From the sequence record AJ748296.1: a stretch of DNA of 33,641 bases. The stretch is one strand, 5' to 3'. The notes under the pieces were generated by a model. The model ran no database searches and was not told the DNA's origin. It was given only the letters and a program-made list of their open reading frames with translations. The position numbers and the translations under genes are program-made. Below, piece after piece: positions 2,678 through 28,772 of this stretch. Numbering within the stretch: position 1 is the stretch's first letter; each line of letters starts with the position of its first letter.

Positions 2678-2726
2678 TATTTGACAATTTTTTAAAATCA
2701 ATATTTAAAAATGTCATGTTTTTATA

Positions 2727-3044
2727 ATGAATTATATGATTTTCAATTCATTAATTGTTCAAAAATATATTTTAAATAATGCAAAAGCAGTTGCTACAAT
2801 TAGGAAAAAAGGTTATTATAAATTATATCAAAAAATTATTTTGAAAGTTGGAGATAAAAGATTTTATGGAAAAGTTATCGCAAAAGCTCCAGTTACTGAA
2901 TATTGTCTTTCAAAATATGTGAAATTTAGCGGATTTGAAAATGTTGAGAATTGGTTAAATGAAGCTAAAAGACTTCATAATGATAAAATAGATTTTGAGA
3001 GATATGAAATTATTGTAATTTGGATAAATGATTCATTCTTCTAA
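2727..3044 (+). CDS. ASCH/PUA-like domain protein, 105 aa
   Basis: KAVATIRKKG, VGDK and KFSGFENVENWLNEAKRLH match the ASCH pattern K.ATiR...GD...eGF.s.eef. Confidence 0.65.
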   Translation: MNYMIFNSLIVQKYILNNAKAVATIRKKGYYKLYQKIILKVGDKRFYGKVIAKAPVTEYCLSKYVKFSGFENVENWLNEAKRLHNDKIDFERYEIIVIWINDSFF

Positions 3045-3953
3045 TTCTATACTATTTTTCTTTTTATTTTGTTGTTTCTCTTTCTTTAACTCATTTGCAA
3101 TTTTATAGTTCTGAATTATTTCAGTTACTAAACTATCAAGTCTCATTTTCCTTAATTTTTCTGCATATATCGTATATTTATTTTTTATATTCCAATTATT
3201 ATATTTTAAAATCCAGGCATTCATAGTTTTTAAAATTTTTACATTTGAGAAATCATATTCAAATGGAAAATTTGTTTTATCTAAGAATTCGAAAAGTTTC
3301 TCTTCTTCTTCTTTTGTTAAAGTTCTTTCTTTTCTATCTCCTACATATCTTCTAGTTCCATCAAACCAAAAAATTTCACGATAGCTTGCTGTTTTTGTAT
3401 AAGTTGTAGTATCCATAGAGTTAGCCGTATCAAAAATTTGAAGAAAATATGGAGCAGACATACCTAGAACATGTAGTCTTTTTACATATTTTCTAATATA
3501 ATAATACCACGGAAATGTATAAATTAAAATTTTTAATTTACTAGATGCAATTATTCCGCCAAATGCAATATAATCAGTATATTGGCTATAAAAATCTATA
3601 GCTTCATCTACTTCTCTAGTTGGATAAAGATGTATAACTGGGATAATTCTTTCTATATATTCCATTTTCGTATATAGATATTCGAAATATTCAAAATTCT
3701 TTCTATCAAGAGGAGAAAAAATAGATGGAATATCAAGAGAAAAAAATGCATAAGCATTATACGTTTTGTATTTTTCTAATACATCTTTTACTGAAATTTT
3801 TAAATTGTATAACGCAATTTGATAGCCACCGCTATCGACCCAAGTTTCATTTTTCCAGGTTATCTTTTTGTTTCGTAATTGATTGATCAAAATTGGAAAA
3901 TTTATTTTAATTAATAAATCTTGTGATGAGACAATTCCAAATACTATTTTCAT
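3033..3953 (-). CDS. TGT/DpdA-like guanine transglycosylase (SIRV1 ORF306)
   Basis: Motifs WVDSGGYQ, SLDIP, IPVIH, AFGG, HVLG, MDTTT of the TGT TIM barrel; no CxCxxC zinc site. Confidence 0.85.
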   Translation of the reverse strand: MKIVFGIVSSQDLLIKINFPILINQLRNKKITWKNETWVDSGGYQIALYNLKISVKDVLEKYKTYNAYAFFSLDIPSIFSPLDRKNFEYFEYLYTKMEYIERIIPVIHLYPTREVDEAIDFYSQYTDYIAFGGIIASSKLKILIYTFPWYYYIRKYVKRLHVLGMSAPYFLQIFDTANSMDTTTYTKTASYREIFWFDGTRRYVGDRKERTLTKEEEEKLFEFLDKTNFPFEYDFSNVKILKTMNAWILKYNNWNIKNKYTIYAEKLRKMRLDSLVTEIIQNYKIANELKKEKQQNKKKNSIELEE

Positions 3954-3961
3954 ATAGCTTT

Positions 3962-5161
3962 CTATTTTGGTATGACATTTATTTTACTTTTTCTTAATAA
4001 GTATACTATAGCTCCTATTATTGGTAATATCATAATTCTTAATATTGTATATTCTATATTTCCGGCAATTACAAATTTATAGAATATTGGATTTTGATAT
4101 CCTAGATAAAAGAATAGGAATATCTGAATTGCTAAAGATGTTAGAACTATAGAAAATAATTTTTTATCATTCATAAGTTTCAAATATGCAAATGCTACAA
4201 TTATGAAGTTCCAAAATATGAATAATAATCCGTCTAGTCCGAAAGATATGTTAAATCCTAGCAAGTTTTCTAGAACATTTGCTATTGTTTCTGTTGAGAA
4301 AATTAGCAATAAAACATTTGGATTTATTTTGCTAAATTTTTCTGGTAATACTTTATCAAAACTCATAGTTTGAATTAATCTACTTTGGATTTTATTTGCA
4401 ATTGGCATGTAACTAAAGAACCAAATTGGCATTAGTGCAAACAATATGTTTAAATTTGAATAGCTATCTAGAATTGATAATATTGCTACGACACCATAAC
4501 TTACAAAATATCCTATCATACTTGATTTTTTAATATTTTTAATTTCTCCAGCTATATAACTAATTGCATTTATGAAAATGAAAGCAGATAAATCAAATAG
4601 TAAAGCAGATAATAAAGTATTAGAAATTGTGAAAGTCTGATATTGATAATTGAAAGATTTAAAAGCTATAAATATTGCAATTATTATTTGGAATATTGCT
4701 AATATGTCTACAATTTTTGCATATATTCTCTTACTTGCTATAATTAGTAAAACAAGAGGAAATAGAGATTCGACAATTAGAAATTGTTCAAATTGATTTT
4801 GAATATTAAAGTTTAAGAGTACAAGATCTCCTAAGATTGGCTGAGATAGTACATATGTTAGCCATAATGAAATTCCAAAAATTGTGTAAAATTTTGAAGA
4901 AAATGCAGTTCTAATATAGGCGTAATCACCGCCATTTAATGGAAATTTTGTTGTTAGTTTATAGTACATTAAAAGAAGTGGAATTTCAAATACTGCTCCA
5001 ATTACAATTGCAAAAAGTAGATTTACATTTTTCATTAGACTTGAAACAAATAACGGATAACTTATTCCGCTTAAAATTCCCATATAGAGAAGATTTATTG
5101 AAAAAATATCTAAAACATTAAATGATTTAATTATTCCAGAACTTTTTCTTTCTAATTCCAT
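3962..5161 (-). CDS. APC-superfamily amino-acid permease-like membrane protein (ORF399)
   Basis: About 11-12 hydrophobic segments; N-terminal RKSSG..KSF..LD.F..NL..MG..SG..YP and P.NGGDY.YI motifs of archaeal APC permeases. Confidence 0.8.
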   Translation of the reverse strand: MELERKSSGIIKSFNVLDIFSINLLYMGILSGISYPLFVSSLMKNVNLLFAIVIGAVFEIPLLLMYYKLTTKFPLNGGDYAYIRTAFSSKFYTIFGISLWLTYVLSQPILGDLVLLNFNIQNQFEQFLIVESLFPLVLLIIASKRIYAKIVDILAIFQIIIAIFIAFKSFNYQYQTFTISNTLLSALLFDLSAFIFINAISYIAGEIKNIKKSSMIGYFVSYGVVAILSILDSYSNLNILFALMPIWFFSYMPIANKIQSRLIQTMSFDKVLPEKFSKINPNVLLLIFSTETIANVLENLLGFNISFGLDGLLFIFWNFIIVAFAYLKLMNDKKLFSIVLTSLAIQIFLFFYLGYQNPIFYKFVIAGNIEYTILRIMILPIIGAIVYLLRKSKINVIPK

Positions 5162-5204
5162 AAGCTAGCTAAATTGCTAAGACATAAATAAAGTCACACA
5201 ACTA

Positions 5205-5592: not shown

Positions 5593-5952
5593 TTATGACA
5601 TTTTTATATCTTTTTTTGTCTTTAGCATATACTTATATACATTTTTTATATCGCTAATAGACTTTGGAACTAATTCAATTCTAATGTCAGAATGTGAAGG
5701 CATATGTTTGTGAACTCTAGAATAATCTAATTTTTTATTCGTGAAAACTAAAATATGATAATGTAGACCATTTGAATTTTTTGTAGTTTCTTTTATAGAA
5801 AATACATGTGAATTTTTATCATGATTATAAATATAACTACGAAATTTTCTAAATATTTTTTCAGTATCTCCATACTTATAATTAGTTGTAATAGTAATGA
5901 AATAAGTGTAAATATAAGAAAAATGAAAATTTAAAACTTTTTTCAAATCCAC
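5593..5952 (-). CDS. rep: HUH-superfamily replication initiator Rep (ORF119)
   Basis: Motif I (FITITT), motif II (LHYHILV) and motif III (YKYMLK); GTG start. Confidence 0.92.
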   Translation of the reverse strand: MDLKKVLNFHFSYIYTYFITITTNYKYGDTEKIFRKFRSYIYNHDKNSHVFSIKETTKNSNGLHYHILVFTNKKLDYSRVHKHMPSHSDIRIELVPKSISDIKNVYKYMLKTKKDIKMS

Positions 5953-28538: not shown

Positions 28539-28772
28539 TTATTTCACCAATTTATCATTCTGTATATGACATTTATAAATTTTTATTTAAGTTTTTACGT
28601 TTATATCTCATTATTTTTGTATTTTTTTATACTTATAATTTCTGTAGAAATACAATTAATATAACAAAAATGAGAAAAATTATTGATAAAATTAACTATT
28701 TAGAAGAAAATTTAAAATTAGAAGAATTAGAATTAATATCTAAAAAATGAAAAAAATAGTTGATAAAAAAAA

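Follow-up and report, generated by a model that had tools for sequence, protein, structure and literature searches.

A conserved permease gene beside a predicted zinc-less DpdA-like transglycosylase gene in Sulfolobus islandicus rudivirus 1

Do three contiguous genes toward one end of a rudivirus genome make up a single system that imports, writes, and reads a modified base? The question is posed by Sulfolobus islandicus rudivirus 1 (SIRV1) variant XX (AJ748296.1; host S. islandicus LAL14/1), whose 33,641-bp sequence, analyzed here at its full length, is referred to as the window. The original prediction for this locus proposed that an APC transporter supplies a 7-deazaguanine or related precursor, that a TGT/DpdA enzyme writes it into viral nucleic acid, and that an ASCH protein reads or recycles it. 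The layout on which it was built, three contiguous open reading frames (ORFs) with an 8-nucleotide (nt) gap between two of them and an overlap between ORF105 and ORF306, was re-found in the ORF list as follows:

2727-3044, plus strand: ORF105 (SIRV1 gp05), ASCH-fold protein
3033-3953, minus strand: ORF306 (SIRV1 gp06), predicted zinc-less TGT-superfamily transglycosylase of the DpdA kind
3962-5161, minus strand: ORF399 (SIRV1 gp07), compact APC-family permease

The spacer between the ORF399 stop codon TAG (3962-3964) and the ORF306 ATG (3953) reads AAAGCTAT, and the convergent ORF105 and ORF306 share 12 nt at the 3' end of each (3033-3044). Across the tested 3.2 kb, the window is 100% identical to AJ748296.1 and essentially identical to the SIRV1 sequence NC_004087. 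On co-occurrence, a system of all three genes is close to refuted, whereas the permease and DpdA-like genes form a truly conserved pair, a co-inherited two-gene cassette. The explanation that we favor, although we would give it only an even chance of being right, is that ORF306 is a DpdA-type writer using a base made by the host, that ORF399 is a co-inherited permease, and that ORF105 is an unrelated accessory gene.

The permease-DpdA pair and its predicted writing enzyme

The distribution of the three genes was determined by running tblastn on 50,697 records of phages and archaeal viruses; further counts came from IMG/VR scans and from a script run across all fetched loci. The DpdA-like gene was found in SIRV1 to SIRV11 and related isolates, in SBRV1, SRV, and STSV1/2, and in an STSV4 fragment. 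The permease gene was found in the same SIRVs, SBRV1, and SRV, plus SSRV1 and ARV2, both of which lack DpdA. Among SIRV-type contigs, the two genes were adjacent and co-directional without exception (24/24), and no contig carried only one of them (0/24). Across four genera (Ice-, Usa-, Azo-, and Japarudivirus) the genes co-occur, and in three of these they are adjacent, in two different layouts:

SIRVs: permease at the RHH/Rep locus; DpdA at the same locus, in tandem with the permease
SRV: permease at the capsid locus; DpdA at the same locus, convergent with the permease
SBRV1: permease beside the RHH/Rep genes; DpdA beside the capsid gene, 4.6 kb away

The rudiviral DpdA proteins were monophyletic in a tree of the family (99/99), with SBRV1 and SRV as sister to the SIRVs. 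The permease tree was not congruent with this one: the Hoswirudivirus proteins grouped with a cellular Sulfolobus protein, and SRV took no resolved position. At least one relocation of a gene to its partner's side made or restored the adjacency, whichever arrangement is ancestral. The proposed link between transporter and DpdA therefore stands as far as conserved adjacency goes, including the second layout in SRV, but is loosened by the occurrence of each gene without the other: the permease without DpdA in Hoswirudivirus, and DpdA without the permease in STSV1/2 and in 15 cellular loci. No paper linking the rudiviral permease and transglycosylase was found in literature searches.

In the Usarudiviruses (the American SIRVs), the permease stop and DpdA start codons overlap (TAATG) or lie 2 to 3 nt apart. 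Because this leaves no room for a promoter between the genes, the pair reads as bicistronic in these viruses. In SIRV1, no T5 run was found on the coding strand from 4877 to 3746, and read-through from the permease gene into ORF306 is therefore possible.

Family labels for these proteins rest on family profiles and on predicted structures (AlphaFold2 [AF2] models compared with Foldseek), since single-sequence searches were nearly blind: for ORF105 and ORF306, no usable match came from Pfam, NCBIfam, PADLOC, or the PDB. At the level of fold or profile, the labels first assigned (APC transporter, TGT/DpdA, and ASCH) were upheld. ORF306 matched phrog_887 (expectation value [E] of 3.5e-72) and ORF399 matched phrog_8289 (1e-197), PHROGs families named queuine tRNA-ribosyltransferase and amino-acid permease, respectively.

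The best solved-structure match of ORF306 was the archaeal tRNA enzyme ArcTGT (1iq8/1j2b). The ORF306 family profile matched 1iq8 at an E of 6.5e-4, with the DSGG, LD, and catalytic Asp segments aligned, and matched Salmonella DpdA (7ui4) at an E of 0.059. When the AF2 model (pLDDT 91.6) was compared with the PDB, ArcTGT (E of 4e-9) and bacterial TGT were retrieved (E of 4e-9 to 1e-6; probability 1.0), although the TM-score of the match to ArcTGT was only ~0.55 and the identity ~15%. Comparison of the same model with BFVD returned phage DpdA-type proteins at an E of 1e-8 to 1e-10. Invariant positions in a 33-member alignment of the family were D40-S-G-G-x-Q45, L73-D74, H108, G132, H161-x-L-G164, and D181. 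Within this set, D40, D74, D181, and H108 align with the DSG, LD, and D249 of ArcTGT and the VAH of DpdA, and the Asp/Asp/Asp/His residues correspond to D95/D130/D256/H181 of Salmonella DpdA (PMC10164549). The three active-site Asp residues, assigned in that work to general acid/base catalysis, base recognition, and nucleophilic attack, and the base-recognizing His are thus all kept.

The conserved set of DpdA and TGT enzymes comprises three invariant Asp residues, one His, and a CxCx2Cx22H zinc site (Gedara et al., PMC10164549). In contrast, no such zinc site was found in ORF306, which has no Cys at all, and no Cys is conserved in its family alignment. Neither Pfam nor the AF2 model revealed a PUA or other tRNA-binding C-terminal domain within its 306 amino acids (aa); the last 100 residues are modeled as helices and a Lys-rich tail. 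Searches with Pfam TGT (PF01702) and NCBIfam TgtA gave no match for ORF306. Like the phage and viral DpdA proteins (DpdA1 to DpdA4; Hutinet 2019, Cui 2023) and bacterial DpdA 7ui4, then, ORF306 has a TGT-type TIM barrel with invariant Asp and His residues and no PUA domain; unlike DpdA, it has no cysteine or zinc site, no large Ins8 insertion, and no Pfam TGT match, and it is shorter (306 aa versus ~410 aa for the Salmonella protein). Compared to ArcTGT, it lacks the zinc subdomain and the C-terminal domains, PUA included, that hold tRNA. Profile and model together identify ORF306 as a putative minimal, zinc-less member of the TGT superfamily of the DpdA kind, with an architecture of TIM barrel plus helical tail and an intact catalytic Asp/Asp/Asp/His set.

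This assignment agrees with the literature, in which SIRV1 NP_666594 is already listed as DpdA within the group of DpdA-only viruses (Hutinet 2019 supplement, PMC6884629); as in that group, the enzyme is virus encoded and is not accompanied by genes for preQ0 synthesis. The idea of the transglycosylase as a DNA writer fits this listing but was not new. By analogy with DpdA, we infer that ORF306 would exchange guanine in DNA for a 7-deazaguanine.

The permease, the ASCH-fold protein, and their promoter-like elements

ORF399 alone gave a subthreshold match to Pfam AA_permease_2 (PF13520; E of 1e-4, 21.8 bits against a cutoff of 27), a family precomputed for a few of its close relatives, and NCBIfam returned only weak matches, all of them permeases. 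A profile built from 13 viral relatives matched GkApcT (6f34) with an E of 1.7e-6 over profile positions 24-371, nearly the whole length, followed by AdiC, CAT4, and xCT. Hydropathy peaks fit 11 to 12 helices in 399 residues. ORF399 therefore resembles the GkApcT/AdiC-type transporters (TC 2.A.3) in its ~12 helices, its near full-length profile match, and the A-G-E-x-K-N motif of transmembrane helix 6 (TM6), where F-x-N-x-x-S-Y-x-A-G-E-x-K-N aligns with F-D-A-V-S-T-A-A-E-E-V-R-N of GkApcT. It differs in being very compact (399 aa) and in TM1, where the canonical G-(S/T)-G substrate-binding motif (G-T-G in GkApcT) is replaced by S-Y35-P, with Y35 invariant.

An exhaustive search of 1.84 billion representatives with the ORF399 profile recovered 11 proteins at E ≤ 1e-30. 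Beyond the rudiviral proteins, the nearest relatives were proteins of 466 to 540 aa from Sulfolobus, Sulfuracidifex, and Stygiolobus, named "amino acid permease" or "APC family permease." In the alignment, TM1 (S/A)-Y-P-L was common to the rudiviral permeases and these cellular Sulfolobales relatives. A G-D-Y-x-Y motif was also common to the rudiviral and Sulfolobales APC permeases, which form a small clade. ORF399 is thus a divergent 12-helix APC permease from a Sulfolobales-specific clade, and it would take up an amino-acid-like or organic-cation solute.

No YhhQ-like match for ORF399 was found in Pfam, NCBIfam, or PHROGs, placing it outside the families known to carry preQ0, preQ1, or queuine (YhhQ and QueT/QrtT). 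No queuosine or archaeosine genes were found in the one neighborhood examined for the nearest cellular relative. Import of a 7-deazaguanine by ORF399 is plausible but stays a possibility, because each gene of the pair also occurs alone, the host makes preQ0 and archaeosine (G+) itself, and the pocket motifs are common to relatives that are not linked to DpdA. In SSRV1 and ARV2, a conserved 207-aa protein is encoded 9 nt after the permease gene on the same strand (SSRV1 gp28, locus L012, 5264-5887; ARV2 gp33, locus L013, 5264-5887). We considered whether it could be a hidden DpdA or ArcS-core protein, which would have given the permease a second tie to the pathway; no relation emerged from Pfam, from hhalign with the DpdA family, or from BLASTP with DUF5591 proteins.

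The ASCH assignment of ORF105 comes from structure. With its AF2 model (pLDDT 93.5), the top eight Foldseek matches in the PDB were all ASCH proteins, including PH0355, PF0455, AF2351, YqfB, and EF3133 (probability 0.94 to 1.0; TM-score 0.53 to 0.67; weak E of ~1e-2), and the SIRV2 orthologue is named "ASCH domain-containing" in UniRef. ORF105 shares the small fold of beta-barrel and helices with PH0355, PF0455, and the Escherichia coli ac4C amidohydrolase YqfB. Unlike these proteins, it matched neither Pfam ASCH (PF04266) nor, even with a profile, any PDB sequence. Its stretch G-A-K-x-V-A-T-I-R resembles the ASCH signature GxKxxExR but has T at the E position, is one residue longer, and does not keep the motif Lys invariant. 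All 25 homologues of ORF105 (25/25) begin at MIFNS, which is residue 4 of ORF105. The true start is therefore probably ATG 2736 (102 aa), placing the annotated start 9 nt too far upstream; with a start at 2736, the TGTC element also falls at the customary distance of 24 nt.

In its distribution, the ASCH gene parts from the other two. By tblastn, ORF105 was found only in SIRV1, SIRV2, the fusellovirus SSV6, and, weakly, ATSV. Just two of the 24 pair-carrying SIRV-type contigs, SIRV1 and SIRV2, have it; SIRV3, the closest relative, has an unrelated gene at that position, and SSV6 and four other viral contigs carry the ASCH gene with neither DpdA nor permease. Such scattered occurrence indicates that it was gained and lost independently. 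The ASCH gene is also classed as accessory, whereas gp13 and gp14 are SIRV core genes (PMC6315595). Contiguity in SIRV1 and SIRV2 does favor a joint system, as does the structural match to YqfB, which acts on a modified nucleoside. ASCH is a PUA-like fold, and certain folds of this type bind modified bases. Nevertheless, ORF105 lies in the opposite orientation and has a promoter-like element and terminator-like T-runs of its own. The survey thus found the independent gain and loss that the original prediction had named as its refutation, and the role proposed for ASCH as reader was not supported. ORF105 is an ASCH-fold accessory protein shared with fuselloviruses, and it would sit here only because this genome end collects accessory genes.

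Promoters were judged by counting TATA and TGTC elements against ORF starts. TGTCATA occurs 19 times in the window compared to ~6 expected, a number reached in none of 100 shuffles (0/100), and an ORF start lies 11 to 42 nt downstream of 15 of the 19 sites. Immediately before most copies lies an A/T-rich, TATA-like stretch, typically AAAAGATATAAAAA. The pattern fits the "virus-specific consensus element" mentioned for SIRV promoters (PMC1635249). The sites include 2083, 5594-5600, 6413, 11553, 15585, 24877, and 28565-28571, giving a genome-wide map of SIRV-type promoters. The elements at the three genes are as follows:

2701..2718, plus strand: ORF105 promoter-like element, TATA-like ATATTTAAAAA then TGTCATG, 24 nt before ATG 2736
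3055..3065, plus strand: ORF105 terminator-like T-runs, two T5 runs 11 to 21 nt past the stop, inside the Lys-rich 3' coding end of ORF306
3971..3991, minus strand: internal ORF306 promoter-like element, AAAAG-TAAAATAAA-TGTCATA inside the ORF399 3' end, 24 nt before ATG 3953
5181..5192, minus strand: ORF399 promoter-like element, TTTATTTA plus TGTC, 23 nt before ATG 5161

The ORF105 element has the same TATA and GTC layout as other gene starts in the window. The internal ORF306 element (TGTCATA at 3971-3977, minus strand) is conserved in SIRV1, SIRV2, and SIRV3 only and is absent in the Usarudiviruses. The caveat that the TGT gene has its own TGTCATA box at 3971 was therefore right for SIRV1/2/3 (Icerudiviruses), in which separate initiation at ORF306 is likely, judging from the sequence, beside possible read-through. 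A-runs at window 3036-3075 encode the Lys-rich tail KKEKQQNKKKN at the C terminus of ORF306 and read as T5 runs on the other strand; the same bases serve as ORF306 coding sequence and as a terminator-like signal for the convergent ORF105.

All three genes can be lost. SIRV2 gp10 to gp14, which include orthologues of each, disappeared spontaneously on passage in CRISPR-null hosts, and the mutants grew as wild type (PMC6315595). The three genes are dispensable in the laboratory, which fits accessory or counter-defense roles. No accession or gene-name match to them was found in the supplements of Bhoobalan-Chitty 2024, where anti-defense genes are predicted. SIRV3-like contigs (DpdA 84-85% and permease 82-92% identical to SIRV1) also turned up in assemblies labeled Streptomyces gamaensis, Planomonospora alba, Paenochrobactrum glaciei, and Nocardioides koreensis. 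The Planomonospora alba contig, at 31.9 kb, is nearly a whole virus genome. These contigs are almost certainly contamination, and such contaminated assemblies are the reason for the NCBI name "MULTISPECIES ... [Bacteria]" of the SIRV3-type protein P0051.

A homologous host operon and the supply of the base

Cellular proteins ~40% identical to ORF306 were found in Acidianus, Saccharolobus, Stygiolobus, "Ca. Aramenus," and S. tengchongensis. The 90% cluster of the cellular homologue includes S. islandicus LAL14/1, REY15A/HVE10/4, and American and Kamchatkan strains, as well as S. solfataricus P2. In LAL14/1, the host of SIRV1, the ORF306 homologue heads a six-gene operon (locus L082, 9001-16888, within CP003928.1, 7917-26801) with the following genes:

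TgtA-like protein, 294 aa: weak NCBIfam TgtA match (19 bits against a cutoff of 350)
ArcS-alpha core protein (DUF5591), 188 aa: NCBIfam ArcS, 9e-20
HerA paralogue, 537 aa: PADLOC defense HerA models, 1e-29 (Acidianus orthologue)
1012-aa protein: no family or PDB match
Coiled-coil protein, 229 aa
NurA-domain protein, 363 aa

The TgtA-like, ArcS-core, HerA-paralogue, and NurA genes were found in LAL14/1 and across the sampled Sulfolobaceae genomes, and the six-gene operon is conserved in Sulfolobaceae of several further genera. The ArcS-core (DUF5591) gene stands beside the DpdA-like gene in STSV1/2 and in 13/15 cellular loci, the other two being short contigs or a contig end. No APC gene was found within 10 kb of the DpdA-like gene in STSV1/2 or in any of the 15 cellular loci. 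The TgtA-like proteins of these pairs and ORF306 are members of one protein family. In contrast, rudiviruses pair the gene with the permease, no ArcS-core gene was found anywhere in the window, and the rudiviral proteins form a clade of their own. Components of the bacterial Dpd restriction-modification system, DpdB (a ParB-like ATPase), DpdC, and DpdD to DpdK, were not found next to ORF306, and the host operon carries ArcS-core, HerA-like, and NurA-like genes instead. The gene content suggests that the host operon may be a module combining a DNA mark with a nuclease, whose marking enzyme would be mimicked by the viral DpdA. It could be an undescribed system of 7-deazaguanine DNA modification and nuclease action. 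Literature searches found no paper tying the Sulfolobales TgtA-like/HerA/NurA operon to 7-deazaguanine in DNA.

Where the base would come from bears directly on the role of the permease. S. islandicus has FolE, QueD, QueE, Gat-QueC, and ArcTGT (PMC6884629, supplementary table 2); it makes preQ0/G+ itself, and import is therefore not needed. The one relative with a measurement is STSV2, whose DNA carries dCDG at 0.04% of G (PMC10516641). The STSV1/STSV2 homologue is 41.5% identical to ORF306 by tblastn, and STSV2 has no such permease. Cui et al. 2023 state that Q/G+ pathway proteins are not encoded by the STSV2 host, yet an S. tengchongensis genome encodes a DpdA-like homologue, P0149 (WWQ61513.1), 38% identical to ORF306. 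Given this homologue, a host contribution to the dCDG in STSV2 DNA may merit another look.

Candidate explanations and their meaning

Under the favored explanation, ORF306 would, like phage DpdA, exchange a small fraction of the guanines in viral DNA after replication. The base written would be a 7-deazaguanine (preQ0 or a derivative) from the host FolE/QueD/QueE/Gat-QueC pathway, and the mark would shield viral DNA from host nucleases. The most plausible target would be the host system around the TgtA-like/ArcS-core/HerA/NurA operon, with the viral gene acting as an orphan modification enzyme that copies the host self-mark. ORF399 would be a co-inherited, often co-transcribed permease, judging from gene order and spacing. 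Writing would not depend on it strictly, but the recurrent adjacency suggests some benefit common to both genes. Supporting this explanation are the fold and catalytic residues of ORF306, its listing as DpdA, the host pathway, the dCDG of STSV2, the host operon, the conservation of the pair, the single origin of rudiviral DpdA, the independence of the ASCH gene, and the dispensability of gp10 to gp14.

Several points weigh against it. The literature searched does not report 7-deazaguanine in SIRV DNA, and STSV2, the sole measured relative, is modified at a very low level. That DNA rather than tRNA or protein is the target is something that we infer. The operon flanks are conserved between Saccharolobus and Acidianus; the locus is therefore old, which suggests a housekeeping locus rather than a mobile defense island. 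Finally, the favored explanation offers no reason why permease and DpdA adjacency was made or re-made in SRV at a different place and in a different orientation.

A rival explanation is a cassette of two genes in which the permease imports a 7-deazaguanine base or precursor from outside (preQ0, CDG, the G+ base, or similar) and DpdA writes it, with ASCH uninvolved. Adjacency in every SIRV-type genome, stop/start coupling in the Usarudiviruses, and the lack of any single-gene loss speak for such a cassette, as does the finding of the pair both at the capsid locus of SRV, where it is convergent, and at the RHH/Rep locus of the SIRVs, where it is in tandem, with the SBRV1 genes 4.6 kb apart. There is also a precedent: yhhQ (the COG1738 preQ0 transporter) occurs in some bacterial dpd clusters and in some phages, likewise placing a transporter beside a DNA 7-deazaguanine transglycosylase and suggesting that DNA receives a salvaged base (PMC5699537; PMC6884629), although ORF399, with its APC/LeuT fold, is unrelated to YhhQ or to the ECF components QueT/QrtT. 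The noncanonical TM1 of the permease clade, with its invariant Tyr where GkApcT has G-T-G, could also be read in favor of import, but the pocket motifs are the same in the cellular relatives, of which the one neighborhood examined held no Q/G+ genes. The APC family proper is not known to carry purine-like bases. Against the cassette, SSRV1 and ARV2 keep the permease without DpdA, and in the STSV1/2 and cellular loci the partner of DpdA is ArcS-core, with no APC gene inside 10 kb. The APC and DpdA trees disagree in part (SRV and Hoswirudivirus permeases are placed differently), and S. islandicus makes preQ0/G+ itself. STSV2 cuts both ways: its host is said to lack the Q/G+ pathway, and the source of its 7-deazaguanine is an admitted open question (Cui et al. 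2023, PMC10516641), yet it does without such a permease. On balance, we consider a dedicated import-and-write cassette unlikely but still credible. A bolder version, in which ORF399 would be the first APC-type importer of 7-deazapurines and would form with the zinc-less DpdA a salvage-and-write cassette copying the self-mark of an as yet undescribed 7-deazaguanine modification-restriction operon of the Sulfolobaceae, strikes us as quite unlikely.

A different objection is that ORF306 might not act on DNA at all, modifying instead host or viral tRNA, as an ArcTGT-like enzyme without PUA, or protein, by conjugation of a 7-deazapurine as for Cap10 in type IV CBASS. The best solved-structure match is a tRNA enzyme, the host paralogue has a weak NCBIfam TgtA match, some archaea have a split ArcS with a separate TGT-like N-domain (PMC10516641), and protein-modifying enzymes of the TGT family have been described in a preprint (bioRxiv 10.1101/2025.04.06.647259). 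However, ORF306 lacks PUA or any other tRNA-binding C-terminal domain, the homologue-bearing STSV2 has its modified base in DNA, the cellular homologues stand in an operon with HerA- and NurA-type DNA enzymes, and the matches of ORF306 to phage DpdA-type proteins are roughly as good as those to TGTs. We regard a target other than DNA as very doubtful. The full system of three genes, with import by the permease, writing by the transglycosylase, and reading or recycling by ASCH, is exceedingly improbable in view of the scattered distribution, orientation, and separate signals of the ASCH gene.

Returning to the DpdA-type writer with a host-made base, three elements are new here: the conservation of the permease-DpdA cassette, the minimal form of the enzyme with no zinc site, and the host operon with its homologous gene. 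DNA marks of 7-deazaguanine are an established phage counter-defense in bacteria; for archaeal viruses, measured cases number only two. Of the known DpdA-like enzymes, that of the crenarchaeal rudiviruses is predicted to be the smallest, and it lacks the zinc site considered universal for the family. This enzyme travels with a permease, and in the laboratory host a homologue is encoded in an operon together with ArcS-core, HerA-like, and NurA-like genes. If that operon is a modification-dependent nuclease system, it would represent a new type of archaeal defense, and the viral gene would be its countermeasure.

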